Below, one piece after another: positions 36,621 through 62,655 of a stretch of DNA of 64,000 bases. Within the stretch, counting starts at the first letter, position 1. Each line of letters starts with the position of its first letter. Source of the stretch: Mytilus californianus (taxonomy: Eukaryota); NCBI RefSeq assembly GCF_021869535.1, contig NW_026262604.1:6696001-6760000 (forward strand), read 5' to 3'. The notes beneath the pieces were generated by a model. It searched no databases. It had not been told where the DNA came from and was given only the letters and a program-made list of their open reading frames with translations. The translations under genes were made by a program, and so were the position numbers.

Positions 36621-37553
36621 TTATTTTATATCTATATTCTAGAATGAAAGATTAAAGGTAAAAACGTAGACCAAGGGTGTAATTATCTGAAAATGAAGCA
36701 TTTAATCTCAAATAAGGATAAAATAAAATCACAAAAAAACTGAACTCCGAGGAAAATTCAAAAAGGAAAGTCCCTAATCAAATGGCAAAATCAAAAGCTC
36801 AAACACATCAAACGAATGGATAACAACTGTCATATTCCTGACTTGGTACAGGCATTTTCGTATGTGAAAAATGGTGGATTAAACCTCAAATCAAATTCCA
36901 TTATATTGACAACGATGTATGAACAAAACAAACAGACACAATAGGTAAAAATGTCACAAATAGGGGTACAACAGCAGCACGAACCCCACCAAACTGTGGG
37001 TAATCAACCGCATTGCTCTTAAATTCTAGGGCACCAAACATTCATCCCTTTTGTTGGACAACCATACCGTGGAATTTGATTGAAAACAAACAATTTTTTT
37101 CAATTACTTACAGACACAGCATTTTGTTTGAAACTCAGTTTTCTCTCAACTTCTCAATTAATTTCTGAAACTTTTTTTTTCTCAAAAAAAAATCAGAATG
37201 AAATATTTTATGATATAAACATGACCTTCCTCTCAACCAACCAACAACACAAAAAAAAATGAATGGTCGGGTTCCAAAGTTCAGCTTAAGATACCTCATT
37301 CAGTAGACAAAATGCAATTCTAGACACGCGATAAAAGTTTTTGATAGCATCATACCAAACAAATTATATAAACGGTCGATTTCCTATCAAGATTGAAAAA
37401 TGTTGAAATATAGTAAAACAGTTTACACATAGATTAGTAAATTCAATTAAACAGTTTTTGATATAATGATTACTACGGATCATACCATTTGCTATATTCT
37501 ACGCCCATTCTTATAAATACCAAGTACTAGTATTATTTCATTGGTAAATCTAA

Positions 37554-37868
37554 TCAATAGAAAAGAGCCAAATTATTATTCTGACAATTTATCACCGTGT
37601 CATTCAGATAAAAATGAGACAATAGACAGCGACTTTTAGCCGGTTTGTAGCCTACAGAAACGCAGAATGTGGTTTGCATACAGTATACAAAACAATCAAT
37701 CATTGCAGTTACAATAATATCATGTGCACTGAAATCCCGCAAAATCTTACATCTAGAAATATGACCGTCAAAGAGTTTTTCCTTTATGTTACAATGTATA
37801 ATCATTGCTGTAAAGATCAAAACAATTCCAAGTATGCGATTTATTTTTGAATTACATGCTTGTTCCAT
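37554..37868 (-). CDS. Secreted single PAN/apple-domain protein, 6-Cys type A (copy A1), 104 aa
   Basis: Hydrophobic N-terminus ILGIVLIFTAMII; C-x3-C-x5-C-x-S-x2-Y-x6-C-x-L PAN core plus two flanking Cys; an intact paralog exists at 55703-56017. Confidence 0.8.
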   Translation of the reverse strand: MEQACNSKINRILGIVLIFTAMIIHCNIKEKLFDGHISRCKILRDFSAHDIIVTAMIDCFVYCMQTTFCVSVGYKPAKSRCLLSHFYLNDTVINCQNNNLALFY

Positions 37869-37919
37869 GGCAGCGTATTTGTATCTAACTGATGATTTCT
37901 ACAATTTCATGCGAATTAA

Positions 37920-38194
37920 GGTGGTACCAAACACCTTGTCTAAAATTAATTTGGCTCGTTTAATTTTCATAAAATGTTGACAAAATATTTTCTTTGACAC
38001 TTTGACAAAAAATATAAAATTTCAAAAAACTTGAACAACACACTTTATCGGAAAAATTTCATTGGACATATAACAGTTTGACAAACACTAATGTTGATCA
38101 TTGAGAAGCTTTAATATTTCCTTAACAATAGAAAGTGATTAAAATGTTCAGCTGATTTTTACAGAGTTATCTCCCTTTAGTGTTATATACCACC
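37920..38194. mobile_element. Non-autonomous DNA transposon with TTAA target duplication (Kolobok-like)
   Basis: ttaa|ggtggta ... taccacc|ttaa; the paralogous site upstream of A2 (~56066) is empty, with a single ttaa. Confidence 0.75.
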
Positions 38195-38894
38195 TTAAGA
38201 CAGCTTTCCTATTTACACACAAATCTCGAAGCATGAGACTAAGAAGCTCTTTATCTTTCCTGAATAAATACTAAATAGATAGTTTTCCAAAATTTTTATA
38301 TACGAGAAACATTTGTATATCATCTGAGCTTTGAGAAGTTTTCAGATATGGGAAAAATAGTAAATTCTGTAAATAATACGTCGCATGGTCACCATTTTTA
38401 AATTCTATGCTAATTCAGGGCAACATCAAACAAAAAAATCCTCAAATAATTAATTGCAGATCGGCATTACGTTGCGTTAAATCATGAAATGGTTTATGAA
38501 GTGCTGTTAGTGAAATCCTTTCAAGATACAATTACAAATTTGCATTTTAAAAAAGATTTCATTAAGTCCGTTTTGCAGAATAGTATCTAGTGTTGAAAAC
38601 AAATTAAACATGTAAGAAAGATTGCATCTAGGAATCCAATTTACTTAAGAATAGATATTCTACTTGGTCTTTAATATACTGTAAAATGTAATGATTTATT
38701 AAAAAAATGTAGAAAAAACAACTTTATTTATTTTATGCGTCCTAAGCGTTGTATCTGTTCCCTGTCTTACATTTTATATTTGAGAAATAAAACTATAGTT
38801 AATTTCATCACTCGCTAACGTTCGGGATGCAACCCATGTGAAAATATCAAACAAATCTATAAGTTGTATGTATTATTTCTAAATAAGTCTTTCA

Positions 38895-39054
38895 GGAGAT
38901 TACTGTATTGCATTTTAAGCTTGGCCTTCATAAAACGTAGATACTGTCGCAAATTGTGTTTACTTAACGATGCGAAGCGGAGCTATGTAGACGGATATTT
39001 GCGACAGTAAAATCTTTACGAAGGCCAAGCTTAAAATACAATACAGTTATCTCC
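38895..39054. repeat. Long palindrome / foldback element
   Basis: ggagattactgtattg...aagcttggccttc...tactgtcgcaaat mirrored by atttgcgacagta...gaaggccaagctt...caatacagttatctcc. Confidence 0.8.
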
Positions 39055-39814
39055 GTTCGTATGCCACATATTGAAATAAATTCCATTTGAATAAATATTT
39101 TGGCTTAAAAATGCCATAAATGAAAAAGTCCGCTAAACTGTTACATCGTCTAAGGTATCTTAACAATGTTACGTCATAAGTATACTCTCGATGTCAAACA
39201 TAAACATTAGTCTAAGACGTATTTATACTTTTCGTACGCTTCTGAATGGTTTAAATATTGACTTGAAGAATTTGAGGCACAACATGTGTCTTTTTGTATA
39301 TTTTTTGAGAAATTACATACCAAAAAATATTTGGAATTCAAAACGGTGGTTTTTTCTCAGTCACCAATAGGGATGGAGAATGTTATCCTATCCTATTATA
39401 TTTTTTGTTGTTGTCATAAGTAATCAATACTTGAAAAATAGATGAATTCGTTTATCTTTGAAATATAAAAATAAGATTAAGACTATTTCTTTAGATTATA
39501 ATTACTAGTATGTTTTTTTTGTCAGATTAAAAATATTTTCCAGCACTCCCCTTTCACGTTTTTTAATTTTTTTGTCATATGAAAAATATTAGCAATCACT
39601 ACCCTTTCACCCAATTTACAATATAAACTCATCCATAATCTGTATGGGAACTCATCTGTTAAGCTATTTAAAAAGTAATAAAAATCTATATAGACAAAAG
39701 TATGGCTAGTCCACCAAAAAAAGAAAACGAACCCCAAGTTTTAAAATAGAGTTTTCTGGAAGTAATGAAAAGAAGGCCGAGATTCTTGAAAAAATACTGG
39801 ACATTAGGAATATA

Positions 39815-40560
39815 TTGACTCAAAGGTTAAACAAACCTACAGGACATTTGCAAGTTTTAGAAACTTTATTCGAGATGTGGTGTAGTCAGGAAGTAGGAAA
39901 TGCATCTGATGAACAATTAATACATGTACCAGATCCTTTACTAAGTACCTACGTTAAAGCTAGGAAAAAAGATGTTAACCAAAAAATATTCCGTTGTGCT
40001 GAGGACTCACTTAACGTTACAAAGAAGAAGTGGAAAGTCATACCAGATACTGCAAAGACAACCTAAATATAGAGAAATGGACAACAAGAGGACATGTAAT
40101 TATGACAAGAATGAAATTTGAATCCTCTCACACTTTTTTGTGGTCTTCTTTGCCATACATGCAAAACAAGGGGTACTTGGTGAATAACAGAGTCCAACAT
40201 GGTCTGATCTGTAGTGGAATGTTGCCATCACATTATAAAAAGTTTGTAGATGGTGCAGGAATTGGGAAAATTAATAAGAAAAAACTAAATAAGTTCTTCA
40301 ACTCATATGACAACCACATCCAAACAGAATACCACAAGTATACAACAACAGCCTTGCTTGAAGATTCAGTCTCGTATGATGATGACAAATTTGAAGAAAT
40401 AGATATAGTCTAACTGACGCAATGCATGACTGGCGTAAAAACGCTAAAGATGCAAGTATTGTTGCGATTGGTGAGAAAACCCACAAAGTTTTATCTTGTC
40501 AACAAGTTACAAAAGCTGACGATGTTGTGTCTCAAAGACATGAACGTATCAGTACCGTTA
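39815..40560 (+). pseudogene. Decayed DDE-transposase-like ORF within a ~2-kb insertion
   Basis: Frameshifted ORFs 39815-40066 and 40030-40413 continue past a stop as EIDIV*TDAMHDWRKNAKDASIVAIGEKTHKVL...VSQRHE; the region is absent from the paralogous A2-B2 interval. Confidence 0.55.
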
Positions 40561-41080
40561 GCGTTAGCATATTTGGTCCTTTCAACTAAGTGACAAAGTG
40601 AAACCTGTCTCAACTCATGTTCATTGGGCAATCAGAAGTTGTAACAATGATCCAGAGAAAGTAAGGCAAAAACAGGCATTTGTTGTGTGATACTTCTTCT
40701 AGATGTAGAAATGATAAAAAATATGAACCATCAAGGATAGTTTTGAATAATCCATTAGTCGAAATTTGTTACTTGGAGTACTTTTAAATTCCAACTTTTT
40801 TAAGTATCCTCAGGATTGTGTTTTAGGAAAAGACACATTTTATGTTGAAAGTTTCAACAACGTTATAAACATATATCAGGATAAGCGTATTACGTTTGGT
40901 GACAAACAGTACAATTCACGTTCAAAATTGACAGTTTATCAATGGAATGACTCCTGAATTCATATGTTTCTACGACTCTATCATTGAAATTCTTCTGATT
41001 GTTAACTTTCTATTTTATCAAATATAACGTATAAAAAGATACAATTTTAGAATGGTTTATACCTCTCCAAAGTTTGAATC

Positions 41081-41377
41081 TCAGTGAAATAGAATCCAAT
41101 TATTCCTCTGACGTAATTTTACATCCGGGTCATTAGGATGTAACGTCGAAAGTTGGCAGAGCTTCCTGTTGGGTTTGTAATTAACAGAAACACATAATGA
41201 TGTTTTCATACAGTTGATAAAACAATCATTCATATAGGATACAAATATATCATGTGTTGTCATATTACGCTGAATTCTATAACCAGAAATTCCGCTGAAT
41301 ATTTTCTCTTTCATTTCACAACGTGACATCATTATAATAATTCCGAATATTAGTAATGTTCCCAACATGAATTTCAT
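41081..41377 (-). CDS. Secreted single PAN/apple-domain protein, 4-Cys type B (copy B1), 98 aa
   Basis: Signal peptide MKFMLGTLLIFGIIIMMSRC; PAN core DCFINCMKTSLCVSVNYKPNRKLCQL; NMT sequon. Confidence 0.8.
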   Translation of the reverse strand: MKFMLGTLLIFGIIIMMSRCEMKEKIFSGISGYRIQRNMTTHDIFVSYMNDCFINCMKTSLCVSVNYKPNRKLCQLSTLHPNDPDVKLRQRNNWILFH

Positions 41378-44074
41378 GTTTGTTGTTAGATTCTTAATAC
41401 TGCATTTTTAACATGTTTAATAAGCACTGAATATCCGTTCACTTGTATTTTTAAGGATGTATATACAATTATTTTAAGAGAACTTAACTCTGATGAAAAT
41501 CACTGGTACATTTGTTCCAACCATTTTTCATAAATCAATTTATATTTGAACCTTTTACCCTCAGTATTCGTTTCGCCTAAATTTAAAGGTTTGATAATTC
41601 TTTCAGATTAATAAAGCGCCTCTGTTGCACTAATCCTTGCCAGTTAAAAAAATCATTTTTTGTGAAAATATGTTGATTAGAATTCAATAGCACAACCTTC
41701 ATGCCATCCATGTAAAACATCTTATTACAACATATTTTCCTTTAGAATCAATTCAACTTCATTTCAATCTTCTATTTTCTTAATTAGTATTTACGGAATC
41801 AGTTCAGTGATCAAACTGCGGTATTGTAAGAATTTACACTAATAAACAATGTAGCGTTGTTTTTCTTTTTATGCTTTTTCAAAACAATACAAAGCTACGT
41901 GCCGGGAAAAATCCCGTCAAGTGTAAACTAGTTAGTAGTTAGTAGTTAATGCATGTATAATAAACGCATCCTTTAAGCGTAAAAACATTGGGTGAGTTCA
42001 ATTTTTCTTATATAACTTATCAGTCCGTATAAATTTGACATGCAAAATAATCACCTCCTGCCATACACTCATTCTCCAATGTATAATTGCCACTTCCCTA
42101 CATAGACCCTGTAATAAGAAATCCATTTTTTAGTTGTCTCCTTTAAGAGGAATATAAATTTTTATTGACAATGGAGGGCAAATGGAAAGAAATAATTTAT
42201 CTGTGAGTAATATGTGTAACCTTTAATGTTTTCAAATCTTTCAATAACATTAAATTTTTTGATAATCTGAAAACTTCTGATACCAGTAGTTATTTTCCTT
42301 AAATATTGGTTAAAACGCCAATACATGTATTTCACTTTCGAGTTATTATGCAATGCGTGGGCTGAAGCCATTTTTGTCCGGTATAGAACAAATCTTCGAT
42401 TGATGTTAAGATTGTGTAATAACAGAACCAAATCAGTAATCTGATGAAGACTCTGATGGATAGTTGTTTCCTTGGCAAGCATAACATGTCCATTCATTCT
42501 CTCATATTTAGACTTGGTAAAATGATTTCTTTCATTTATAATTCCATATGTCGACATATAAACATCTTCAGCTATGTATTCATTTTTTAATGTGTGGTCA
42601 GATATAAAATGTATTACTTATCCTGATTCACCCCATATGTCGACTGTGTAAATATCGCCTGCTTAAGCATGTATAGGGGAAGCGTAAGTATTTATTCTTG
42701 CATAGGCGACAATACTAACATTTTCTTAAGTTACCACTTTTTATAATAAAAACCTGGATAAACAGTTATGTGTGATATTAGTACTTTATTATTCAGTTTT
42801 GGATGGTATTTTTACCATCTTCGAACGGAGCTTGTTTATGGTATCCATGCCTACGGTCATTTTACATCAAATTTGTGTAATTTGGAAGCCTTTTCGAATA
42901 ATTATCAACAAAATATTTCGATATGTTTCAAAAATTATATTTCAAATATAAACACTGCAGTTATTCATAAATAAATACAAAAAATGTATTGTAACCTTAC
43001 ATCCAAAAACAGTGCTCCTACATTGACTTCCTTTGCCTTGGGTATACGAAAGGCCAACCTAAAGCCGAGAAAATGTAGTACTACTTTTTTCCCTATACTG
43101 TGACATAAAAAATATAAAGAATTCTTATGATACCATCAATGCAAAACTGATTTATTGTGAAACTATTTGCCATGAGAAATACTTGCCTGTCCCTATTACT
43201 TATAGAAACATGGATCATTTTATGTCCCCATCCCTACATTCTGGTTTAACTCTTTCTGTACTTCTTTCAGATAAAGCATGATAAAATACCTGTATCCAAT
43301 CCCATCTGTTCTTATTTAAAAAGAATAGTTAACAGTACTTTTAAACATATAAAAATAACTGTTCCATTCAATTTATATCCATTTAATCCAAAAAATCACA
43401 GCATAACACAAAATCAAGATTGGTCATACTTATCTCCATGCCATGCTTTAGTATATGCCATATTGTGGTCCAAAATTTCAGAGCTTGTTATGTCCATTAT
43501 TCTGTCTTGATATGATAAAGACAAAGATGTTGGACACTAAAAACATTAAATATGCAAAAAACACAGCTGTAAAATTGCATTTTTTGGCTGTATTTATCTA
43601 CAAAAAACTGAATTATGTCACATGGGAGTATTCATTACCAAAACATAAATCTTTTCATTACATGTGACTTATTCTTTTCGTATATGTAAGACTTGTGATA
43701 TCCCTCCTTAGAACACACTATACCCTTATGTGAGAGTAAAAATCGTCCTTCGTAGACATTATACGTGTATGTGAACCTTATTTCCCTTTGAACACACTTA
43801 ACATGGACGTGAGGCTTATCTCCCTTTATTCACATACCGATTATGAAAACTTAAAGAGCTTTTGGGACTGCCAATGAAATTACTTTCTCAACTCTTTAAG
43901 TTTAAGTACCCCAAAGACCAATAGACACTGATTTGAATAACTTGAGAAAAACCATACCGTACAGTAAGCTAAAGAGGTCATGTGATGATAATATTTGAAA
44001 CAATTCAAGGGTGAAAACCAATAGCATGATTTAATCTTAGAACAATAAACCTTTAAATATTGTAGCAGAAAAAA

Positions 44075-45020
44075 GTAAAATCACAAAAATACTGAACTCC
44101 AAGGAAAATTCAAAAAGGAAAGTCCCTAATCAAATGGCAAAATCAAAAGCTCAAACACATCAAACGAATGAATAACAACTGTCATATTCCTAAATTGGTA
44201 CAGGCATTTTCTTATGTAGAAAATGGTGGATTGAACCTGGTTTTATAGCTAGCTAAACCTCTCGTTCTATGACAGTCGCATACAATTCCATTATATTGAC
44301 AACGATGCGTGAACAAAACAAACAGACACAATAGGTAAAAATGTCAAAAATAGGGATACAGCAGTCAATATTGTGTTATCATGTTAATTACAATAAAACA
44401 AACAAATGTAACAAAGAAGCACAAAAAGGCATACATCAAATTTAAAATCCTCAGTTTGCATTTTTTATTATACGATTTTATTTATCTATGTAAAATCCAT
44501 CCATAAAGGATGGAAGGTTTTAAGTACTGGCGTAGAATCGCGCGTTTGACGTCACACAGGTAGATATAAAATAATTTTGTCGTTCAAAGTATGACGGGAT
44601 ACATATAAGTACAGAGTCACGTCAAATGGATATCACAAAAAACAGACTTAACAGTAAAAGTAATATTAATAAAATAAAATAATTTTGTCGTTCAAAGTAT
44701 GACGAGATACATAAGTACAGAGTCACGTCGAATGGATATCACAAAAAACAGACTTAACAGTAAAAGTAATATTAATAAAGACAAATAAAAGAATACTATA
44801 ACACGTTATCAAGATGATAAACAACGTCAGTACGCAGAATCTATACTTCAAGACCATCGTGTATTATTTGTGAAGTTGATACGGAATATTTATCAACAAG
44901 GTCTTAATTGGTACCTTCCGATGAACTTTTTTAGAAAAATGACGAAACGTTCTTTGACATACCCCTGGTTCATCAACTTTCTGCTCAGACACTGGTGACG
45001 TTTTACAAAGTCTGAGTAGA
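44075..45020. mobile_element. Retroelement-derived repeat (aaaatcacaaaaatactgaactcc family) with internal ~110-bp tandem duplication
   Basis: Same head at ~8030, 30535, 34560, 36720 and (inverted) 54480-54590; duplicated block at 44568-44665 and 44677-44778; Penelope-like coding remnant on the minus strand at 44900-45020. Confidence 0.65.
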
Positions 45021-45419
45021 AGCTGCAAGCTCTTGAATACCGAATAAGTTGGGAAATAGGCAGCAATCATCGATAATCACCTGATTACAGGCTCTTTACT
45101 TGTGAAGTTTAAGGCTCGGGCTAAACATGTCTCTAACTTAACCTAGAATAGTGGTATAACAGCATGAAGAGTATAACAACAGAATAAACTGTAGAAATCA
45201 GTTAAAAATTTGCAGGATTCATCGATACTAAACAAAAAACAATTAATAAACAATAGAAAGAACTGACCTAAGAGAAATCAGTTTCCGAATTTAGTTAAAA
45301 GTCCAATTTCAACTTGTTAAAACAAATAAAAAAAAAAAACAACGCACCTCCATGTTCTTCAATGAAACAAACTTCTATCTAATACCAACCGAAAATTTCA
45401 GACAACGTTACACAAGGTC

Positions 45420-47260
45420 CTTGAATGAAAAAACAATGTATCTATCACATGACTAGTTGTATTAGATTCGAGGCTCACTTCCGTCCGCGTGCCATTGAAC
45501 GGATAAATGAAATATGACATAACTTCTGTGAAATCAAGGAAATCTTTAAACTGTAGATCCCATGAAATATGACAACAACAACACATATTAAGTGCAAGTC
45601 TTTGTAAGAACCAGGCAATTAAAAAAAAAAAATCAAAACATGGCCGAAAACAAACCACCGACCTAACCATCCTATTTTGAAGCTACCTTCATCCGGAGTT
45701 AGAAATGGCAGGTCTTTTATTTCTGCGGGTCTGGTAATTCGAGAAATCTCTAGATAACTTTTGGCAAATTGCGGAGTTAGCTCCCCTTAATTGTTAATTT
45801 CTAGGGCATTTCAAACAAATCATATCTTGAATTACCAGAACAGGAAAAGGAAACAAATGTTATATTCGTGCACCATTATACATTTTGAACATAAATTAAT
45901 GTAAACTTGAGTGGGTTTTTGATTGTCATGTTTCACCACTTCCTGATTCTTAGGCAGTTTGGCACTTAACCAAGAAGTACATCTATAGGTCATCACAGTT
46001 ACGTTCTTTAACGATCGAAAACAATCATTATTGAATATTATTATATTCTTCACACGCCGTGTTTGAGAATGTTGACCCATGTTTGATATCATATTTTGTT
46101 GCTTACCGTTTAACTTTCAATTGTTAGGTAGTGGGTCTGAATAAAGGGAAGTCAAATTAATTTATTTGAGTTTCTTTCCTTCAACAGAAATGTTTTAACT
46201 TTTTATTTCCTGACGGTTAAGTATCTACATTTAGCTGTTGTAAACTGTCAAAGATTCATTTCAGCATATTTTCCTATACTTTTATTATAAAAACTGGATT
46301 TTGATTATTATATATATCAATTGTTATTTATGTTGTGTACTTATTCTGATTTTAACTTGAAACTGACTGTTTAAAGATAATATGTCAATCAGCATTTGAT
46401 TTGATTTGATAATAAATCACGTAACGAGTAGTATCTAAATGTATTTTGTAAAATTTGATAATACTCGTTTTAACATTTCACAATAGAACTGAAAAACCTG
46501 CAATTGCTTAGAAAGAACTGTTTTGATTTGGGTAAACTTTCATTTAACATTTCCACTGAACTGACATAATAATTCAATTCAATTTGGTAAATTTTGTTAA
46601 ATTGTCTAGTTTTAAAAACCGGATATATCAGATACATGTATCTTTCTGCAGGCGTCCCTAACTTCCCTTACACTATATATATATATATGTTTGTAAACCC
46701 CGTGTATCACCAACGACTTTCATTGGACTGCCAGTTGCATAATATTTCAAAGCCAATTACATTCGAATTTCTTCAGGTATAGCATACGACTATACTATCT
46801 ATAATTAATTCTGGACAATTTCATGCAAGAGTCAGGTATGAATTGAAAAACATCCCAGTTTTAATACTTTCATGATTTGCATATATCAAAATTAATTGTC
46901 ATTGCTACATTACATTGTTCATTGACATAAAATGAACAAAATATAATTATTTTTTATTCAATTTTGTTTTAAGATAAAAGTTCATTCCCTATGAAACCTG
47001 ACATTTTTTTGGAAAGTTTTTACCATTCAAAGGTTAAAACATTTACTGAGAACTGTGTTTCATAGCTGCGAAACAGTGGTGACGTTTTCCTACAAACAAG
47101 TGTTTCCGAATTTGCTGTGTTACCACCGTCAGAGTTTAGTTAAAGAGCCTTACTCACTTGCCATTAGAAAACTAAGCCCAAACACATGCGTGTTTGTTCA
47201 ACTAGTGATAACATGTACATTGATCCAGGGTTTCCGCAGTTATGGTGGTATTGGGAGATG
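45420..47260 (-). pseudogene. Decayed duplicate of FN3-CUB exons (parts of FN3-2, CUB-1 and FN3-1)
   Basis: 45440-45570 matches 20280-20410 (HISWDLQFKDFLDFTEVMSYFIYPFNGT); 46185-46265 matches 21528-21620; 47140-47240 matches 22665-22770 with frameshifting deletions. Confidence 0.8.
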
Positions 47261-50200
47261 GGCCACTGTGAATAGAGAGTATAAAGGGAACTCAAACTAA
47301 ATATGACGATGTCGACTGTCATTTTTTTCTAAAGTATTTCTAAAAAAAATTCATAACTATAATTTCCGACCGTGCGAGACCCTCATGGGAACCAAGGTCG
47401 TTAAACACCCCCATAGTAGTAGTTACTATGTTTAGAACAGGCTTTGTTTACAATATTTTGTAGGTTATAAATGCAGGTGTACCGTCGCTCATGCATAACA
47501 GGTCCTTAGTCTGCTTTAAAAAGAAACAATCAAAAGCAGAACACCCTTTGAATACAATAAATTTTGTTAAATATACAGTTGTACCAGCGCTCATGCATTA
47601 CAAAAACTGTGTTGGGAAAGGGTTGGACGCCCCCTTAAATGTCCAACCCGACCACAATCTGTATGTGCCTGTACCAAGTCGGGAACCTGTAACTCACTGG
47701 TTGGTCGATTGTTGCTCTATAGCATATTTGCTTTTTCGTTTATTGTTTTGTACACAAATCAGGCCGTTAGTTTTCTTGTTTGATATTCCTTACATTTGTC
47801 ATTTCGGGGCCTTTTGTAGCTTGCTGTGCTGTTAGGCCGTACTTTTACTTACCATAGCTGACCTCAACGTCATTTGGTGGTCTCTGATGGAGATTTGTCA
47901 AATTATACCACAACTTATTATTTTCATATCAGTTTGTGATAACTATTAACATGTGGATATACCTTTTAAAAAAGACAAGTTTACTGGTTATCGAATAATA
48001 TCAAAAAGTGTCTCTTAGCGGAATGGACTTTGTGTAAAGATGATAGCTCTAGAAACTTATATTATTTCTCACTACGGCTAGAACAAAATTTTTTAAAATT
48101 TAGAACACTAACATACAAGTGATCAAGTTTTAACATGTGAGCAAGTCAGTTTATCTTAACACCATTTTAACAATTGTCAATTTGAATAACAGCAATAATA
48201 GTGCTATATTTCCTGGTAATGTAGCATCTAGTACATCAAAATCCATTCATCCGTTATAAATCTCTTGGCATTTGACTTTATTCATTCTCTGAACTTCCGA
48301 AAGAGTGGCTGTTGTCGACCTCCAACTACATTTGCAAATCAGTCATTTCTTTACTACAGAAATGTTCAATTTATATCCACGAGAGACAAAGGCCGCGTTC
48401 ACACTGCGAATGCGAAACATATCTGTTGTATACTCAAGTTTTATTGTTGACATCTTTGAAAAAAAAATAATAACATTTTGAAATTGTTTTACGTCCATTC
48501 AATTCTATATTCATATGTCAATTAACATCATCAACTATTTGCAAAATAAACGCATTGATACTTCATTATCAATGTTCAAACGCTCAATTAAACCTGTTTT
48601 AAACTTGTTTAGGCCTCAGTGTAAATACCTCCTAAAAGAGGGACGAAAGATACTAGAGGGACAGTCAAACTCATAGATCGAAAACAAACTGACAACGCCA
48701 TGGCCAAAAATAAAAGACAAAAAGACAAATAATAGTACAGATGACACAACATAGAAAACTAAATTCTAAGCAACACGAACCCCACCAAAAACTGGGGGTT
48801 ATCTCAGGTGCTCCGGAAGGGTAAGCAGATCCTGCTCCACATGTGGCACCAGTCGTGTTGCTTATGTTATTACAAATCCGGTAAATAGCCTAAATTGAGA
48901 ATCAAACGTTAGGACAACACAGTTCAGTATTTACTTTGTGATTAAGTTTAATAAATAATGCTTCAATATCTATGATGAGTTTGCTTTTCAAGTTATATTG
49001 CTAATATAACGGAACTATAACCATCTATCATACAATTGGGACGTTTAGCAAGTTATATAACCAGGTTTTACCAACCATTTTTTTGTTGTAATGCTTGTAA
49101 ATGTCACGGACGCAATCACGAGTTGATTGACCGTTATGGAATATCCGTTTCAAAGAAGATAAAGGATATGTTCTAAATGTATATAAATTGGATATAATTC
49201 CTCTTATGTTTATGTATTTTAAACTCTGAGCGTTCTTAAATAAAGTTGAATTCATTGATGCGCAACAAAATTGGTATTTTTTTTCACCTTTTTCTAAGCT
49301 CGCATACTTATTTATATTTATCTTTATTTCATAAGCCACAGAACATGTAGAATGGAAGAGCATACACAGTATTGTCTATCAAATGGATGTATGAAACCTG
49401 GACCCGGAATACATAAAGTCACTTCCAGATTATGAGTAAAAGTATTAAATTTTGAAGAATCGATGAATCGTATGGGACAAACGAGCAGTACATCATTAAT
49501 GGCTGTCATTTCAACTGAATTCTTTCCGGAATAAAACCTTTATGCTTTACTTAACGGAAATACTTCAACAGTATTATGTGTTAATTTTAAATAAAACGTA
49601 TAGGTTTCCTTATAAAATTTCAGAAAATAATCATAAATTTTGATAGCACAAAAATATCTTAGTTGACTTGTTCTAAAAATCACTGATCTAATAGTTTTAT
49701 AAACTTTTTTTTAAGGCTCCTAAATAGCACAGACATTAATGAATGTATACGATGTTAACAAACGTAAAACTGATTAAAAAAGTATAACAAAAGTACCAAA
49801 CTCCAAGGTAAATTCAAAATGGGGAGTCCGTAAAACTGACAAAATCAAACACTATCAATCAACAGAACGAGTTAAAAACATGTCATATTCCTGACTTGGT
49901 ACAGGCATTTTCGGAAGAAAATGACGGGTTGTTTAGCCTGGTTTTATTGCTGCTAAACCTCACACTTGTATGACAGTTGTTTATAGTTCCGTTTTATTGA
50001 ATAAATTGGGTGAAATAATAGGTAAATGTGACTAGAATGGGGATCTAGCAGCCAACATTGTACATCACAGCTGCCTAAAAAATTCTGAAAAACATACAAA
50101 TTAATCTAATCAAGATTCTTCTTTATTGCATCAGCTGAAATTATACACATTATATATCAACGATCTCAGTGACTTGTTATCATAGTTAACCATGTCGTCA

Positions 50201-52048
50201 GTATTATGAGATAAAAGGCCTTTTGTTTGATTTAAATGATGGAAATGAACTGAATATTCATAGAACTTTAGTACTTAAAAGTAAAATTTCGATGATGTCA
50301 TTTTAGTTCGTAACTGACCTTCAATAAAGTGTGCAGCAGAGGTTAGTAAACTGTTTCTGAAGTTCATTTATTATAAGTTTGATGGGTTTAGATGCGGATT
50401 AAATTCATTATTATAGTAATATCTTTTTGTTACGTCACTGATTATTGACAACAGTAGTTTACTGATGTTCAAATCTCGTAAATCCATTTTGAATATAAAC
50501 ATCAAGTGAAATCAGAATCCCTGCTGGAAGAGTTTTTGCGTTTTCAGCAGAAAGCGTTATACCTCTAATGGATTGAGAATGTGTTCGTCGGTAGGATAAA
50601 CAACGCATATTATTAATGCTGGCAAAATATATAGAGAAATAGATGAAATAATGGTATATTATTAGAACATGCACGCGTTGAACTGAGATAAGTAAACGGC
50701 ATGTGATGGGACATATGAGAAATGGGAAGTGTTGGGGAAGCTGAAATTGTCATGTTTGTCATAAATCCTAGTTCTTAAGTTGTCCTGTGTCAATTTCAAG
50801 AAAAAAAAAAGACCCATTACATTTTCCACGTAATAAAAAGAATTTCGTATTTTTTTATTTATCGGAGAGTAAAATATTATTCCATTTCAGGTTATAGATT
50901 TTGCTGTCGTGTTTTCTGTTTTTCCTATGTTTAATTTTTTAATTAATAGAAGAGAAGTTGTAACGAAAACAAAAGTATACGCAAAAATCAATAAGACCTA
51001 TTGATTCCAAACTATTATGTAATTACTAAAAATAGACAATGTATTATTGAATTCGTACTTCAATGCATGTTCAAAGTAATCTAAATCTTGATCTAAGACA
51101 ATATACAATAGAACGCCTAATGTCGTTTTAACACTTGATTTATCAATCAATTTCGCTTTTAAGTATTATCAATTGAGTTTCAGTGCTTCTGTACTGGCAG
51201 GATTTATGACGTAATTTTCTATTATTCTCCGTTGATATATTTGGAAGATATAAAAAAGTAAAGTTCCAACTCTCTCAAGCAAAGTTGACCATAGACGATT
51301 TTGGCTATTCCTTTCAGGCCATATAACTCATAACGTTTCTACCTATCCACACATCATTGGTTATTAATGCTTAGGTTTCCGCATTTCTGATAAAGTTAAA
51401 TCCGGAAAAGCACTTCGACGCACGAAAATTATATAGTGTAATTTTCATCATAAAGATAAATGAATTGAATGTAAGCTTGGCCTTTGCCAATCATAATCTT
51501 ATATTGGCAAGGTATTAAAGAGAGTCTGGAGGGGGTTTCTTCATTTCTGTCTTCTTTATTTTTAATGCCATTTTCCTATTCTCTATTTTTTGTCAATTAA
51601 TCTCTATTTTTTATATTTTAGCAACCCATAATTCTCTATTCTTTTTATTTAGAAACCAATTATTCTCTATTCTTCATTTTTTTCCACATTTTTCTCTATT
51701 CCTGAAATTTGTTGCACATTATATTGCATTATTTGCCCATTATTCTGCATATTTTGGCCATTACTATCTATATTCTATAAACCCCATATTGACCCCCCAT
51801 GCAAGAAAATACAGCTATTTCCATTTTCAATGCAAACTAATCAAAAAATTATATGTTTTTGATTTCAACCATTATGTTGATGTAAAATCACCAATTGTAT
51901 ATTCCGCATAACACATAAAAAACACCATGAATCATAAATACTCTACATGAAGGGAATAAATTTTTAGCTAAAAGGAAATTTTCAGATGAAAATGTACCGT
52001 TTTTTTTATGATTGGAGACCAATAATATGAGGCCGGCGTTACCTGTGA

Positions 52049-52709
52049 AAGGGGACGAAGTCTGTATGAATTATTTTTTTTTAATTCAAACATATTTCAA
52101 CTTCAAAATCTGTTCAAAAAAGAAACGGAAATACCCTTACGTTTCCGATTTCGGTTCTGTTGTTCGGAATTTTAGTTGTGACGTTATTTATGTTATGACG
52201 TCATATTCAATGTAAACAAAGAAACGCTATCAGGGTTGCGTTCAATATCGTAGCGGCTACATAGGGCTACGTAGATTTATGACTATTGAACGTGTAGCTA
52301 GCCTAGCTGCTACATAGATATCAATAGCAGCTAGGCTAGCTACTCGTTCAGTAGACAAAAATCTACGTAGCACTACGTAGCCGCTACGATATTGAACGCA
52401 ACCCAGGTAACGTTTTTTCATATCAAGCCATTCAAGGAATTATTGAAAATGGAATTGGTATTGCGTTCCTTCCTATATTTTACTAGACTGATAAATATAT
52501 ATATTACTCAAAGACTCATGCAAACGAGACCGGAAAAAGGAAGTAGATTTCTGCGCAAATGCGGGAAAATAAAAAAGTCTGAAAATTAAAAAGTTAACGA
52601 TTTTGAGTTCATTAGTAGAACGAAAATTTCGGGAAATTTTCCCGATTTTTTTTTTTTTTTTTTTTTTTTTTATTGATTTTTCTACCGTAATAGGGGACTT
52701 CGTCCCCTT
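52049..52709. mobile_element. Insertion with aaggggacgaagtc/gacttcgtcccctt inverted ends and a nested ~172-bp palindrome (52233-52404)
   Basis: Absent at the paralogous site (~33425); terminal hairpin aggggac-ttc-gtcccct; poly-T tract at ~52646-52671. Confidence 0.7.
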
Positions 52710-53049
52710 ATAATCCAATTTTCAAAATGGCGGTTGCCCTAGATTGCAGACTGGTAAACTGTGAATAATATTTGTTGCAAACAAAACAGTCGTTTAAAAC
52801 AATTTCCATTAGAACAACTAATCACTGTATATACTTTCTATGCATTCGATAACTTGCTTTGAGTTTTCATTGTTGATGTAGTATTTCACTGCTGAGTAAA
52901 TATATGTCGTCTAAATGTTTGTTTGGTTAAGCATTTTACCGAGAGATAATCGGGAAAAGTATTTATGAGATTTGTTTGCTCGTGATAGTATATGTTGGTT
53001 GATCTAAACCCCGATCTGTATTCTCAAATATACCGGATAAGCTTAATTC

Positions 53050-55090
53050 ACTGTTGCACGAGACCCATAACACTTCCGTTATTGGTTCAAATCCAGCTAA
53101 GTTCAGATGGGTTGCAATTATTTTGCACAGTGCTAGCCATAGGCTATTCAAAACCGTGACAACTTATCCAAAGATGGGGAAAACGTACCATTTAAATGTA
53201 TTATATGCTAATAAGGGTTTGGATGCTATTAATATTAGAACATCTTTTTTCACAACAAATCTGTGCAGAAAACGACTTGAAAATAAAACTACACTAAACT
53301 TATTGTATCTAAAATTTTCAATCACAAAAAAGGTATTAGAGATCGTTACCCCCAAGGATGAAAAACCCTAGTCTTTCATTCTTTTTCATTGTTTCCATAC
53401 ATATATAGTCATCTGGTCATGTTATTACTGGAAACTTTGGCAGCGATAACAATGAACAAGTAAGAGAATTAACAGCAAAGACCCGAAATATTGAATTCCC
53501 CAATCTATCAACTGGAACAAGAACTTCAGTTACTAATGATGCAGTTGGGGACTATCCCAAAAAATTACCAAGGCACGAGCCATATGAACTAAACCTGAAC
53601 ACTTGTGTTATACGTTCAAAAGCGTATTCCAATTCTACGACGTACAATGAGACAACGGGTTTATATTCCTTTCAAGAAGTCAGAGGTTGTTGATGCTTTA
53701 TCTCTTAATTTTCTTTACGACAAATAAGTTTTTTTTCTAGCAGACAAAGCCTCTAAAAATATTGTTATTTGGATGTATAACTTAAGAACTCGGAATTCAT
53801 TGCAAAACTGGGATTTCAATGTAAAGCCTGACACTATTCACGAAAGAGGAGATTTTTCAAATCATAAACAATCCTTCTCTCATTTGGTATTAACATAGAA
53901 TCTTCAACCTCAATACTGGATAGCTAATTACACAAACATCTTTATAAAGAACTATCTATAGAAGAGTCGTCAAGATGTTGCAATCATTCTTTTTGCAGTA
54001 AAAGATTGCTCTAAGAAATATTGCGATGAGGTATATTCAACAAGCGGTGTCAATCAGAAGTGGATTCTTAAAATTCTAAAGATCTACTGAAAATCTTTTA
54101 TCCAATTCTAAACAACTTTGAAGTAATATTAAAAGCGTATAATTTTTCTATGCTTAAGGTTACTATTCCCCATGCACAATTAAAAGATGAAAAACATATC
54201 ATCTCATTGAAATAAGAGTTTTCTACACATGGAAATCGTATTAAATAATTTCTTGTTAAAGGTCATAAACAATCTTTGCGAAGGATCGCACGGATTGAAA
54301 AACCCAACCTATACACCGAAGATGATATCATCAAAATGTCGAACGTTTTGATCGGCAACATGTTTGTTGAGTTAAATGGATTAATATTTCAACAGACAGT
54401 CGACGGTATTACAATAGTTAATAATTGTGCAATCGACTGACATATTTGTTTTTATACTCATATGAAGCAGGTTTCAGGAATATGACAGTTGTTATCTATT
54501 CGTTTGATGTGTTTGAGCTTTCGGTTTTGCCATTTGATTAGGGACTTTCCGTTTTGATTTTCCTCGGAGTTCGGTATTTTTGTGATTTTACTTTTTTCAT
54601 ACAAAACATTCTTCGAAAATCAGCATCTAGCAAAGATTCAGATAAATTGATGATGTCCTATTACTCAATAAGATACATTTCAGTGGGTGCTTGCATCTTA
54701 TATATCCAAATGAACTTGAAATTAAGGATACAACTGCTACAAGAAGGTCTACAGCATATCTTGACCAGTGATATTGACACAAATCGACGATTTCCAACTA
54801 GAATATATTACAAACGGCATGATATAACTTTCTATTTGTCAACTTCTCATTTCTTATCAATAGCATACCCTCCTTTTGATCTATTAGTGTTTACACATTT
54901 AACGTTACGCCCCTGTATGTTCATGCTATATGGAGCTTTATTAGCAACAGTTTGCTCCTTACACAAAACCTGTTCCAAAAGAGTTATGAGGGAAAAAAAA
55001 AGACAATGCATAAGTTTTAAAGTCGCCTCATGACCAATATGCTATACCAGTTTCTCAATTCACTAGCGATATATTTTCGTAGTCTTATTT
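53050..55090 (+). pseudogene. Longer decayed Penelope-like retroelement ORF
   Basis: Fragments YANKGLDAINI, GHVITGN...EQVREL, the RT core region and RIYYKRHDITFYLS are collinear with the PLE-type polyprotein as recalled. Confidence 0.7.
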
Positions 55091-55702
55091 TATATCTATA
55101 TTTATATATAATTTCTTAGTAAGGACAATCCATCGCATTGCTAATTGAATTTTATATTAAGGGCACTCAACATTCATCTTTTGTGTGGACAAACAAAATT
55201 CTGGACTTTGATCGAAAACAAACAATTCTTTTCAATAACTTACAGACACAAGATTTTTTTAACTCAGTTTTTTCCCAAATTCTCACTTACCTTCTGAAAC
55301 TATTTTTTTCAATTAAATTCAGAATGAGATATATTATGATTTAGACATTACACCCCTCCACCTCACCAAACCAATAACGCAAAAAAAAAAAAAACAACAC
55401 ATGAATGGTCGGGGCCAAAGTAAAGTTAAGCTTAAGATGCCTCATTCAGTAGACAAAATGCATTACTAGGCACGCTATAAAAGTTTTTGTTAACATAATA
55501 CCAAAACAGTAAAATAGTAGGTTCTCATCCTGATTGCAAAATGTTGAAACATAGTTAACAGTTAACACATAAATCAGTAAATAAAACATTTTTTGAGATA
55601 ATGATTAATACGTATCATACCAGTTGTTATATTCCACGTTCATTCTTATGAAAAAGAGTACCAAATACTAAGTAATAGTATTCATTTTATTAATAAATTT
55701 AA

Positions 55703-56017
55703 TCAATAGAAAAGATCCCAATTATTATTCTGACAATTTATCACCGTGTCATTCGGATAAAAATGAGACAACCGACAGCGACTTTTAGCCGGTTTGTAGC
55801 CTACAGAAACACAGGATGTCGTCTGCATACATAATACAAAACAATCCACCATTGCAGTAACAATAATATCATGTGCACTGAAATCCTGCAAAATCTTACA
55901 TCTAGAAATATGACCGTCAAAGAGTTTTTCTTTTATGTTACCATGTATAGTCATTGCTGTAAAAATCAAAACAATTCCAAGTATGCGATTTATTTTTGAA
56001 TAATATGCTTGTTCCAT
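55703..56017 (-). CDS. Secreted single PAN/apple-domain protein, 6-Cys type A (copy A2), 104 aa
   Basis: Intact ORF with the same length as A1; 12 aa and about 21 nt differences (hand count); all six domain Cys are kept. Confidence 0.8.
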   Translation of the reverse strand: MEQAYYSKINRILGIVLIFTAMTIHGNIKEKLFDGHISRCKILQDFSAHDIIVTAMVDCFVLCMQTTSCVSVGYKPAKSRCRLSHFYPNDTVINCQNNNWDLFY

Positions 56018-57154
56018 GGCAATATCTTTGTATCACACTGATGATTTCTGCAATTTCATGCGAATTAAGACAGCTTTCATATTTACACATACATCTCGAA
56101 AAATGAAACTTAGCTCTTGATCTTTCCCGAATAAATACTAAATATAGAGTTTTTCAATACGAGAAACATTAGTATTCCATCTGAGCGTTGAAAAGTTTTC
56201 AGATATGAGAAAAATAGTAACTTCTGTAAATAATACGCCGCATTTTCACCATTCTTTAATTCTAATGTGTTTTTTTTAACATAATAATAAATTTGATACC
56301 ATCAGCAAATATTAGACTAAGTGATCATTGTTGGTTAACATGGCAAATATTTCATGCAAATTCAGGACAACATCAAACAAATAGTCCTCAAATTAATTAA
56401 ATGCAGATCGGCATTACGTTGCATTAAATTACGAAATTTTAATTGAAGTCCATTATCAGGAAATTCTTTGAAGATATAATTACACATTTGCATTTTTAGA
56501 TGATTTCATTAAGACTGTTCTGGCAATTAATATCTATTGTTGTAACTAAATAAGTGTCGTCAATATTTTAGAAAGGTTTCATCTAGAGATCTAATTTACT
56601 AAAGAATAAATGTTCTTCTTGGTCGTTGGTGTGAATGCTAAATATAATCGTTTTTCAATTTATGAGTTCTATTAAAGCTTTGTATCTTTTACCCTTTTTA
56701 GGATTTCAAATCTAAAAAAAAAAAATGGAGTTAATTTTATCCCTCTATAACATTTGGGATAGAGCTCGAATATAACGGCACAGCCCATGTAAAAATTTCA
56801 AACAAATGCATAAATTATCTCTAAATGAGCCATTCAGTTATATAATGTCAAGAGTCTAAAAATTGCTATGCAAAATTAATTATCCGAGGCTCTGACCTTA
56901 TGTCTTCTATCTTTCTTTAAGAAGATATTGACCAAACAGCTTGTGTTGGAGGAGCTGGATATCGTTGTAAAGTACTTGATTCGTGGTTATACGAGACTCC
57001 CCGAGAATCGTTTCGGGTTTAAAATACACAATTAATACTTTCTCACTACTCTTCCACTGAAACTGCGTATAATGGCTAACTTTTGTTTTATTCAAATATA
57101 ACATATAGAAAGGTAGAATATTAAAATAGTGTATGCCTCTCTAATGTTTGAATC

Positions 57155-57451
57155 TTAGTAAAAACTAATCCAGTTAATCCTCTGACGTAATTTTACATCC
57201 GGGTCATTAGGATGGAACGTCGAAAGTTGACAGCGCTTCCTGTTTGGTTTGTAGTTAACAGAAACACAAGAGGATGTTTGCATACAGTAAATGAAACAAT
57301 CATTCATATAGGATACAAATATTTTATGTGTTGTCATATTATTCCGTATTTTGTAACCAGAAATTCCGCTGAATATTTTCTCTTTCATTTCACAACTTGA
57401 CATTGGTATAGTTATCCCGAATATCAGTATCGTTCCCAACATCAACTTCAT
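57155..57451 (-). CDS. Secreted single PAN/apple-domain protein, 4-Cys type B (copy B2), 98 aa (in-frame upstream ATGs to 57478)
   Basis: Same length as B1 from MKLMLGTIL; 17 aa differences; the four core Cys are kept. Confidence 0.8.
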   Translation of the reverse strand: MKLMLGTILIFGITIPMSSCEMKEKIFSGISGYKIRNNMTTHKIFVSYMNDCFIYCMQTSSCVSVNYKPNRKRCQLSTFHPNDPDVKLRQRINWISFY

Positions 57452-60400
57452 ATTTTTAGGTTCATAATACTTCATCATTTATAAGCACTAAATATCCGTT
57501 CACTTGTACTTTTAAGGGAGTACATACACTTATACTAAGGAACTTGACTGATAAAAATCACTGATCAAGAAATATGTGCGTCAACCATTTAAAATCAATT
57601 TAAAGTTACTAATTTCAAAGTTACACAACTTGTTTAAATCATGCTTTTTATTAATACTTAAAAAGATACTGAGTAAAACAAATGTCGTCTTACCGATTCA
57701 CGGTAAACGTTGTTCATGCAATACAAAAAACATCCATTGAACACTTTAAATTGATTTGAACAATGCTATATATTTGAACCATTTACCCTTAGTATTCGTT
57801 TCGCGTATATTTGAAAGTTTAATAAATCCCGCCTGTATCAGACGCTTCTTTTACATTCATAGTTAATGTAGCGTAAATCCTTCCGAGTAAAAAACAATTT
57901 GTGTGAATATATGTTCATTGGAATTCAATAGCACGACCTTGGTGCCATCCATGTAAATACATCTTATTACAACATATTTTCATTAAGAATCAATTAAACT
58001 TCATCTTAATCTTATATTTTCTTAATTGATATTTACGGAATCAATTCAATGTTCAAACTGCAGTATTATAAGAATTTACACTAATACGCAACGTACGGTT
58101 GGTTTTCTTTTATGTTATTTAATACAATACAAAACTACTTACCCGGAAAAACACCGTCAAGTGTAAACTCAAGGGGTAGTAAATGCATGTATAATAGAAT
58201 CATCATTTCAATGAAGATACATTGGGTGAGTGGGATTATTCAAATATATAATATAAGTCATTAGTCGGTATAAATTTGATATGCAAAATAATCATCTCCT
58301 GCCATACATTCATTCATTTATTCACCCTGTAATTATAGATCCATTTTTAGTTGACTCCCTTAAAAGGGAGATAACTTTTTATTGACAATGGAGAACAAGC
58401 GGAAAGAGCAAAGTTATGTGTGCGTACTTATATTTAAAGTTTTGTTAATCTGAAAACTTACGATATCAGTAGTTATTTTTCACTAAAAATTGGTAAAAAC
58501 GCCGATAAATCACTTTCGAGTAATCATGCTTTGCGTGGACATAGGCACATTTTTCCGTTGTAAAACCAGTCTTCGATTACCAAAGAGGAAGTAATTGGTG
58601 TAAAGATTGTGTATCGGTATTTGGCAAATTGACTATTGTGCATTAAAGTTGCTTTAACCATGTCTTTTAGACTCTGTTGAATAGTTGTCTCATTGACATA
58701 TATTCATTCTTCCATATTTAGACAGATTAATATTGTCTTCTTTCTATTCATTATCCCATATGTCGACGTAGAAACATCTTCGGCTATGTATATATTCTCC
58801 AATGTGTGATCAAGGTTAACATCTTTTACTTATCCTGAATCATCCAATGTGTCGATTGGGTAAGACTCCTGCCTGCTATACATCTTTAAGGAATTGAATG
58901 GGGGATCCTTTAATTCTGTATTATTTATTTTAAGCCATTCTCTATTGTTTTATACAATTTGCTCATTATTCTCTATTCTTTACATTTTAGCACCCCATAA
59001 TACTCTACTCTCTATTTGTTTGCCTCTTTTCATATATTTACTAATCTTTTTTGTCCATTTTTTGTATAGTATTAGCATTTTATTCGCCATTCTGTAAACC
59101 CCATTCAGACCCTCGTCTATCATATAAAGGATGAATTTAATATATCACATTAAAAAACGCTATTCTTATTCATTACTGAATCGATCTAATGAGTGTAAGG
59201 AAGACCGATCTTTTTTCATATTTACTAACAAACGTGTGTGTAAGACTTGTAATATTGTTGCGCTCTGGTCATTGGCCTCATGTCAAGAACTAAAACTGGT
59301 AAAAAGTGTATTTTTCTAGTTGTGGCCTCCGTTCCACACTTCTCCATGCAGATGTCTCTGGATACACCTCGTACTGTATTTTTATTAAAGGAATGGTTTA
59401 CCTGAACTTAAATCTATTAAAAGATGCTATTTAATCGATGTATCATCTTCTTTTACATGCGCATTTTTTCAAATTTGTCTTTGTTCATCGCTACTTTCAC
59501 TTTTTGGCGCCATTTTTTATGTTGTGTATTTCTTGTGTACTACGTCGTTTGTGGGCGGAGCCAAAAGTATAAATAGCAAGTTTGCATGCACCGAGTAGGC
59601 TTTTCATCTCACATGCAGAACGTTCGCTGTTTCTAAATATTAGAAAACAATAATATTGCACCAAGCAAAATATTGTAAATGCTGTAAAATGACGCAGAAA
59701 CATATTAGTTTTGGACAGAAATTGGTAAATGTCTATTCCGAGACTTTATTAAAAAATTTTGATTCATTAATCGAAGGCTACTATAAAACTCCGTCGTCTG
59801 CCGTTTTGCACCAATCTGCGTTGTCGGTGTTTCTTTTTTGGCTAGCACCAATCATATTTGCTCGGTGCTACACCAAGTGAAATTAATTTGTGAAAAAGTA
59901 TTTTTATTCAAGAGAAAGCACCTAAATATTTACTTATTAGTCTTATATTTACCCTTATGAAATTATGAGGTCAACTATATATATAACCTGGACCAAGCAG
60001 GGTCCCAAATTATTTGCTGTGCACCAACTAGATTTGTTTGCACCGAGTGCTAACATGAACTACTTCTAAGCCTTTAGGGACAAATGCATCTATATTTATT
60101 ATAATATATATCTCTTTTCATGTGTATTATGAACCACTGTTTTTGTTGTATTGCATATTACTGAAGCAGAAAATAATACAATTTTTGAACTTCCATTATG
60201 ATTTTTATTTTTACTTCCTTCACCAGAGGCCCACATAAGTGACATGGGTATCCTGACTCGAAAACCCCGGAACGTTATAATATCTCCCTTGATACATTCT
60301 ATACACTCTTTTACCTAATGTAAGGGTTAATGTCATTCACCGTACGCATTATATGTGTATGTGAGCGTTATGTCCGTTAAAGCGCACACAACATGAACGT

Positions 60401-62356: not shown

Positions 62357-62655
62357 TTAGTAGTAAATAGTCCATTTGTGTTTCTGATTTAATATGAATC
62401 CCGGGTCATAAGAATGGAACGTTGATCATTCACAGCGATTATTGAAAGGTTGGTAATTAACAGAAACACATGATGTTGTCTGCATACAATAAACTAAACA
62501 ATCCTCTATCATAGATACATCTGGTTCATTTATTGTTAAAACGCCCGAATTTTAAAATCAGAATCAAAACTTTTGAATATTTTCTCTTTTGTTTCACAAC
62601 AAGCCATCATGAGGATAGTCCAAAAAATCATTATAGTTCCGAATATCAAGTTCAT
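62357..62655 (-). pseudogene. Fifth PAN/apple mini-protein gene (4-Cys type, copy C), disrupted
   Basis: MNLIFGTIMIFWTILMMACCETKEKIFKSFDSDFKIR, then a 1-nt frameshift (~62545), then GVLTINEPDVSMIEDCLVYCMQTTSCVSVNYQPFNNRCE*STFHSYDPGFILNQKHKWTIYY*; TGA at 62426-62428. Confidence 0.8.

Follow-up and report, generated by a model that had tools for sequence, protein, structure and literature searches.

Can two cysteines that occur together in some members of a gene family, and are missing together from the others, be taken for a disulfide that is already known, or has a new one arisen? The question is raised by a 64,000-nucleotide stretch of the Mytilus californianus genome (contig NW_026262604.1, positions 6,696,001 to 6,760,000 of the forward strand; this whole stretch is called the window below), an AT-rich sequence (~32% G+C) from a 1.65-Gb assembly, in which five related open reading frames (ORFs), A1, B1, A2, B2 and C, all lie on the minus strand. 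In every one of these ORFs, an N-terminal hydrophobic leader is followed by a domain of ~78 residues that we assign to the PAN/apple fold, and there is one coding exon per gene; the domain has six cysteines in type A and four in types B and C. The best explanation overall, to which we give a probability of about 0.6, is a lineage-specific tandem array that descends from a four-cysteine ancestor and in which type A has gained a third disulfide.

The two A copies in the window, A1 (37554..37868, a single ORF) and A2 (55703..56017), encode 104-residue precursors of six-cysteine PAN mini-proteins; A2 is the least diverged A copy, and its predicted mature domain comprises residues 27-104. B1 (41081..41377) encodes a 98-residue precursor of a four-cysteine PAN mini-protein, and B2 (57155..57478) is a 107-residue ORF of the same four-cysteine kind that shortens to 98 residues when read from its second ATG (57451), the start used in the first-pass annotation of this DNA. 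The fifth member, C (62360..62655), lies beyond the interval 37554-57451 to which that annotation was assigned and is a pseudogene of a four-cysteine copy: its reading frame shifts near 62545, past KIRA, and it also contains an in-frame TGA. Outside the window, type C is represented by an intact copy (L017:1459-1758:-). Identity is 88% between A1 and A2, 83% between B1 and B2, and 45-48% between the A and B types. The set of ORFs is not a product of chance, since they are paralogues of one another (45-88% identity), each has a hydrophobic leader at its N-terminus, and the cut-off of the Pfam family PAN_1 is exceeded by three of the four A and B proteins. When the mussel's own genome, in which the window is C24:6696001-6760000, was searched first with A1 and afterwards with a profile of the family, members were found almost only at C24:6733557-6840843, a 107-kb array that is on the minus strand throughout and holds 14 intact and ~5 broken genes; the window contains its 3' end. 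Along the direction of transcription, the gene order is E-psi-D-psi-psi-C-B-A, then E-F-D-E-D-psiC-B-A, then B-A. A literature search found no paper on such mussel proteins.

How secure is the fold, in which a single helix packs against an antiparallel sheet with a hairpin? The gathering cut-off of PAN_1 (PF00024), 21.4 bits, is exceeded by B2 (30.6 bits), B1 (26.9 bits) and A2 (25.4 bits), and A1 falls just below it (19.3 bits). A family profile compared with solved structures matches MIC4 (Toxoplasma), factor XI, SML-2 (Sarcocystis), HGF and plasminogen at E values of 1e-11 to 1e-5, and leech antiplatelet protein is also among the solved chains matched. From a 134-row alignment, AlphaFold produced a model of mature A2 with a predicted local distance difference test (pLDDT) score of 88.1 and a predicted template-modelling (pTM) score of 0.78; this replaced a poor model of full-length A2 made from a 16-row family alignment (pLDDT 53.7). 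When the mature A2 model was compared with the PDB using Foldseek, the top 50 of 50 matches were PAN/apple domains, with template-modelling (TM) scores of up to 0.77 and root-mean-square deviations of 1.7-2.9 Å, and the best of them were the HGF N and plasminogen PAp domains (TM 0.71-0.77). The first-pass annotation had argued for this fold from the cysteines; because Pfam, the profile search, the model and Foldseek agree, the assignment is borne out and stands without the cysteine argument.

The hallmark of the PAN domain is a set of four strictly conserved core cysteines, with a C-x3-C pair in the helix (PMC9249922). In the mussel family, these four cysteines are invariant in 16 of 16 aligned members, as had been claimed, and they make up four of the only eight invariant columns among those members; their spacing, C-x3-C-x5-C-x11-C, is unchanged both in the 16 and in 134 wider homologues. 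In the A2 model (mature numbering), strands are predicted at 10-12, 15-16, 25-26, 45-49, 54-58, 67-68 and 75-77, and a helix at 30-39; by homology, the core disulfides C2-C5 and C3-C4 would link this helix to the central hairpin.

The two additional cysteines of type A are found in the motifs SRCKI and INCQN, and the ORFs, the alignment and the codons all confirm the first-pass description of six domain cysteines in A1 and A2, and of tyrosine or phenylalanine at the first site and arginine or asparagine at the second in B1, B2 and C. The first extra cysteine is codon 40 of A2 (55898..55900, minus strand, TGT), directly after the conserved Gly/Arg of the G-x-K-I strand; at this site, the B copies have tyrosine (TAT/TAC), the E and F copies phenylalanine (TTT) and the C copy of the window phenylalanine. 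The second is codon 95 of A2 (55733..55735, minus strand, TGT), five residues before the conserved tryptophan of the last strand; here, B and E copies have arginine (CGT/CGC), C and D1 have asparagine (AAT), D2 has phenylalanine, D3 isoleucine and F valine. The arginine of type B assumes a gapless V-x-x-[C/R]-Q-x-x-N-W alignment, as MAFFT shifts a one-residue gap here and pairs the cysteine with a leucine. No cysteine occurs at either site in any of the 11 intact non-A copies, and both cysteines are kept in all six known A-type sequences, namely the three paralogues of this array together with P0001, P0142 and P0002 from other samples (66-74% identity). The full profile search returned only one A-type representative, and a second word search with P0002 gave no new A-type sequence.

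Cysteines also turn up elsewhere in single copies. The third A paralogue, A3 (L003:1501-1812:-), has a seventh cysteine in SCVCV; D2 (L007:1483-1770:-) has one in KFCEV, three residues past the first A-type site; E3 (L013:1465-1758:-) has one in IFCRS; and E1 (L015:1459-1755:-) has a doubled cysteine at the leader boundary. Judging from sequence, these single additions, which give odd totals, could be unpaired thiols or early decay. In a contig from run X4, which carries another species label, positions 55720-55969 of the window are matched by an A1-like allele or paralogue with A1-type substitutions, in which both extra cysteines are kept and the third core cysteine (codon 69) is replaced by tyrosine (TAC); this contig may represent a decaying copy or an assembly error.

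Is the extra pair simply the clamp of the classical apple domain? Apple domains pair C1-C6, C2-C5 and C3-C4, and four-cysteine PAN variants lack C1-C6. The first-pass annotation read the mussel proteins in these terms, such that the extra pair would be the C1-C6 disulfide, kept in A and lost jointly in B and C. We surveyed the outer cysteines in 525 PAN cores from 131 homologues (517 scorable; repeats within one protein are not independent), drawing on a profile search of 1.84 billion representative proteins that gave 140 homologues, including ~100-residue stand-alone proteins and multi-PAN proteins. Canonical outer cysteines, found in 198 of the 525 cores, lie 21-30 residues before C2 (mode 24) and 22-31 after C5 (mode 28), and the canonical C6 comes after the terminal aromatic strand. 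In type A, the first extra cysteine precedes C2 by 19 residues and lies ~5-13 positions inward of the canonical C1, and the second is 14 residues after C5 and precedes the terminal W-x-x-F-Y strand, the protein itself ending at the canonical C6 place. The family hidden Markov model (HMM) puts the A-type cysteines in columns 16 and 72, whereas the upstream cysteines of other domains cluster at column 3 and the canonical last cysteine falls beyond the model end (column 84). Profile alignment to factor XI apple 1 sets the first A-type cysteine opposite residue 11 and not opposite residue 2, the cysteine that we take, from the factor XI disulfide map, to be the clamp partner, and the Pfam match coordinates agree with a non-canonical placement. 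The terminal third disulfide that marks the apple subtype, the six-cysteine form of factor XI and prekallikrein, was thus not found in type A, and on these alignments the extra pair is not at the classical apple C1/C6 positions.

The reading as a retained clamp does have points in its favor. Both it and the gain that we prefer join an N-terminal to a C-terminal segment, and among PAN domains at large the outer pair is indeed gained or lost together, with both cysteines in 248 of the 517 scorable cores, neither in 183 and one only in 86. In other words, the first-pass claim that the outer cysteines vary together holds for PAN domains in general; within the mussel family, it comes down to one event. 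Given that the placement is non-canonical at both ends, and that the other lineages and nearest small homologues all have four cysteines, which makes a single gain on the A stem simpler, we regard a retained apple clamp as decidedly unlikely. Among the 134 aligned homologues, cysteines at both A-type columns are confined to the five A-type rows; the second column is occupied by a cysteine in only five other PAN cores.

Comparison with better known PAN proteins points in the same direction. The factor XI and prekallikrein apple domains have the same fold, and their third disulfide likewise joins N- and C-terminal parts, but it does so from the two extreme ends of the domain, on the C-terminal side beyond the last strand, whereas the A-type cysteines are further in and the second of them comes before the last strand. 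The best structural matches, HGF N and plasminogen PAp, have the four core cysteines and the same helical C-x3-C pair and are without a terminal clamp, as are types B to F; they are N-terminal modules of large multidomain proteases or growth factors, however, whereas the mussel domain makes up the whole of a protein that is predicted to be secreted, and identity to them is 11-15%. Closest in size are unnamed ~100-residue proteins of invertebrates and metagenomes (P0033, P0042 and P0043), which likewise consist of a leader and one four-cysteine PAN domain with the same core spacing, and which, unlike type A, all have four cysteines or an odd single extra one; in ESM Atlas clusters of ~100-residue PAN or hypothetical proteins, the commonest taxon is Rotifera. 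The layout nearest to that of type A is found in compact six-cysteine repeats (P0035, P0053, P0057, P0090 and P0096), whose outer cysteines are 16-19 residues before C2 and 16-19 after C5, with a strand before the first cysteine and an aromatic strand after the last, as in type A. These repeats sit in long multi-PAN proteins, unlike the stand-alone type A, and local pairwise alignments of A2 with them covered the core only, the flanks aligning poorly; by their sequences, they may simply be canonical domains with shortened loops.

If the pair was not retained, how did it arise? The intact non-A copies and the nearest small homologues all lack cysteine at both extra sites, and in a tree the five A-type sequences cluster together, with 0.51 substitutions per site on the long stem that leads to them. 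(The tree with outgroups rests on 83 columns, has many open forks and draws a long-branch outgroup into the A clade, and was used only for the grouping of type A.) With four-cysteine proteins in all the other lineages and among the nearest small homologues, a history of repeated joint losses would be the more complicated one, and a single gain of both cysteines on the A stem is, on the sequences at hand, the most parsimonious. Each site differs by a single base from the B-type codons (TAT/TAC against TGT at the first, and CGT against TGT at the second, where the change is a CpG transition). We can therefore outline a sequence of events in which the ancestral protein would have been a four-cysteine PAN domain with two disulfides, and in which two single-base changes on the A stem, TAT to TGT and CGT to TGT, would have created two new cysteines, one after the conserved glycine of the first long strand and the other at the turn before the last strand.

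A single origin also changes what the co-variation can be used for. The first-pass annotation had offered it as support for real selection at the protein level; as it reflects one event, it adds little independent statistical weight, and the case for constraint is carried by other evidence, which does bear it out. The ratio of nonsynonymous to synonymous substitution rates (dN/dS) is 0.19-0.60 across paralogues, with 0.19-0.43 for the A and B paralogue pairs and 0.5-1.0 for the D and E copies; coding identity (86-93%) is higher than that of the flanks (~72-89%) in every pair. Within the A clade, 37 of 78 mature columns are invariant, and the invariance of all six cysteines has P = 0.009. Taken at the level of sequence, protein-level constraint is real but moderate, and a fixed cysteine frame with fast-changing surface residues would be typical of secreted binding or immune-type mini-proteins.

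Do the two new cysteines bond to each other? The most likely reading, and one that we consider probable, is that they form a third, intramolecular disulfide. In the A2 model, they occupy mature positions 14 and 69, at strand breaks: the strands 10-12 and 15-16 flank Cys14, and the strand 67-68 ends at Cys69. Such breaks at well-predicted positions are what a built-in cross-link would look like. By comparison with HGF and plasminogen, residues 67-68 and 75-76 would constitute the C-terminal hairpin, and 10-12 probably pairs with 75-77. The third disulfide would staple the N-terminal strand to this hairpin; in function it would resemble the C1-C6 clamp of the apple domains, from which it differs in position, and it would stiffen or stabilize one face of the domain.

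Several observations weigh against this picture. A tight hairpin like that of HGF and plasminogen would put the last strand between Cys14 and Cys69, and a bridge would then need local distortion; were the sheet flat, the 69-74 loop would have to leave its plane. For the two extra cysteines alone, invariance within the A clade does not reach significance (P = 0.22), and dN/dS between A orthologues is 0.7-0.95, which is almost neutral overall. Signs of damage are seen in some A copies: in A1, leucine replaces the conserved tryptophan of the last strand, A3 has its seventh cysteine, and the A1-like contig has tyrosine for a core cysteine. Finally, in the one genome-project run that is truly RNA, the other runs being DNA or contigs, no reads fell on A2 or B2 in the ~6% that was read.

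The strain across the last strand would be avoided if the extra cysteines were not paired within the chain at all, and were instead free or engaged in intermolecular bonds, either in A homo-oligomers or in links to secreted proteins such as B. This alternative is also favored by the leader-boundary cysteine, which would be unpaired in most non-A copies if it were retained in the mature protein. A cysteine is present at the likely signal-peptidase -1 position in most non-A copies and in A1, which has two further cysteines in its signal-peptide region; since the boundary cysteine is at the likely -1, the number of 'domain' cysteines depends on the cleavage site. The leaders are hydrophobic, with a -3/-1-compatible cleavage site visible in the alignment (no other Pfam domain is present in these proteins), and by the -3/-1 rule the boundary cysteine would be the last residue of the signal peptide, leaving mature B, as we infer, without a free cysteine. 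An even number of cysteines gained together and kept in six of six A sequences moreover fits an internal pair, and we consider the absence of an intrachain bond very unlikely.

A further alternative is that the cysteine difference between A and B has no functional meaning, the array being for the most part a decaying by-product of segmental duplication that is seldom or never expressed. The broken copies (~5 of 19), the empty RNA run, the several intact copies with odd cysteine numbers or lost conserved residues, and dN/dS close to 1, both for A orthologues and for D2 against D3, are all as such decay would have it. Yet 14 ORFs remain open with intact leaders, the core cysteines are half of the eight invariant columns, and both the low dN/dS of the A and B paralogue pairs and the clear excess of coding over flanking conservation tell against a decaying array, which we judge unlikely.

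With a gained third disulfide as the preferred reading, what might the proteins do? PAN domains generally mediate protein-protein or protein-carbohydrate contacts (PMC9249922). The mussel proteins are most likely extracellular glycan- or protein-binding modules of a fast-evolving secreted repertoire, and we propose that type A is a stabilized or re-shaped derivative within that repertoire. More tentatively, at somewhat less than even odds, type A would represent a recent de novo gain of a disulfide in a four-cysteine PAN family, at a site unused by the classical apple domains, and thus a new structural variant of PAN that accompanied neofunctionalization. Small secreted proteins of one or two PAN domains are likewise known elsewhere: leech antiplatelet protein and saratin bind collagen, and SML-2 and MIC4 bind galactose-type glycans. 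Proteins of this kind are matched by the family profile and also by Foldseek, but they are distant in sequence from the mussel family, and no ligand can be transferred from them.

The array represents a family expansion of an ordinary kind, with a single structural feature of modest interest, and it opens no long-standing question. Its value is mainly for annotation: it adds a family of stand-alone, putatively secreted PAN domains that had no name before and is restricted to one lineage, and it is a reminder that six cysteines need not make a PAN domain an apple domain. Should the additional bridge prove real, types A and B would also be a natural pair, ~48% identical and built on the same scaffold with and without a third disulfide, which could be used to study how disulfides originate and what they gain in stability or specificity.

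Are A and B partners, as their adjacency had suggested to the first-pass annotation? This proposal is not borne out. The block that holds A1 and B1 (35524..42651) is collinear by blastn with the block that holds A2 and B2 (53698..58863), at 70-91% identity in pieces; a B copy (L009:1459-1752:-) likewise precedes the third A copy (L003:1501-1812:-), and C-B adjacency is repeated in the same manner as A-B. The arrangement thus goes back to a larger ...E-D-C-B-A unit that was duplicated as a segment, and adjacency inherited from one duplicated multi-gene unit is no independent evidence of a functional pair. For an obligate A+B heteromer, neither independent adjacency, nor co-expression in the part of the RNA run that was read, nor a predicted interface was found; the complex prediction for mature A2 with mature B2 scored 0.00, which counts neither for nor against a partnership. 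In related samples, the A- and C-type orthologues lie on genomic contigs of 1-1.8 kb, which end before the neighboring gene. The two A-B pairs differ in spacing, with A1 and B1 3.2 kb apart and A2 and B2 1.1 kb, because of an insertion of ~2.3 kb in the A1-B1 spacer (38673..40956), seen as a collinearity gap against the second block. The ORFs of this insertion are broken, and one of them (40030-40410, plus strand) has a weak, sub-threshold match to a Mutator-like transposase (E 0.05), so that the insertion is probably a decayed transposon.

Both duplicated blocks also contain a repeat of ~120-150 bp, at 54454-54607 and 36720-36841, with a third copy, inverted, at 44068-44194. It has a summed word depth of 10^5-10^6 in every DNA and RNA run, with hundreds of RNA reads running into unlike sequence, and is probably a very abundant element resembling a short interspersed element (SINE) or a miniature inverted-repeat transposable element (MITE). 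Some 25-35 nucleotides upstream of each ATG, a pyrimidine-rich stretch ending in ...gcag or ...aag resembles a 3' splice site and is followed by a short leader; by this resemblance, splice-acceptor-like stretches lie at 56040-56055 (A2), 57470-57490 (B2) and 41395-41410 (B1). They suggest that each gene has a non-coding first exon further upstream, and that the promoters are probably further upstream too.

Outside the array, a distant stand-alone PAN ORF (L019, at G000:C154:111680601-111680855, plus strand) has 27% identity and the four core cysteines, together with one cysteine three residues from the C-terminus, near the canonical C6 place, and no matching N-terminal cysteine. At the other extreme of size, the top match of the profile search, P0003, is a protein of 5928 residues with 44 matched PAN stretches, from an ENA contig of 690 kb.

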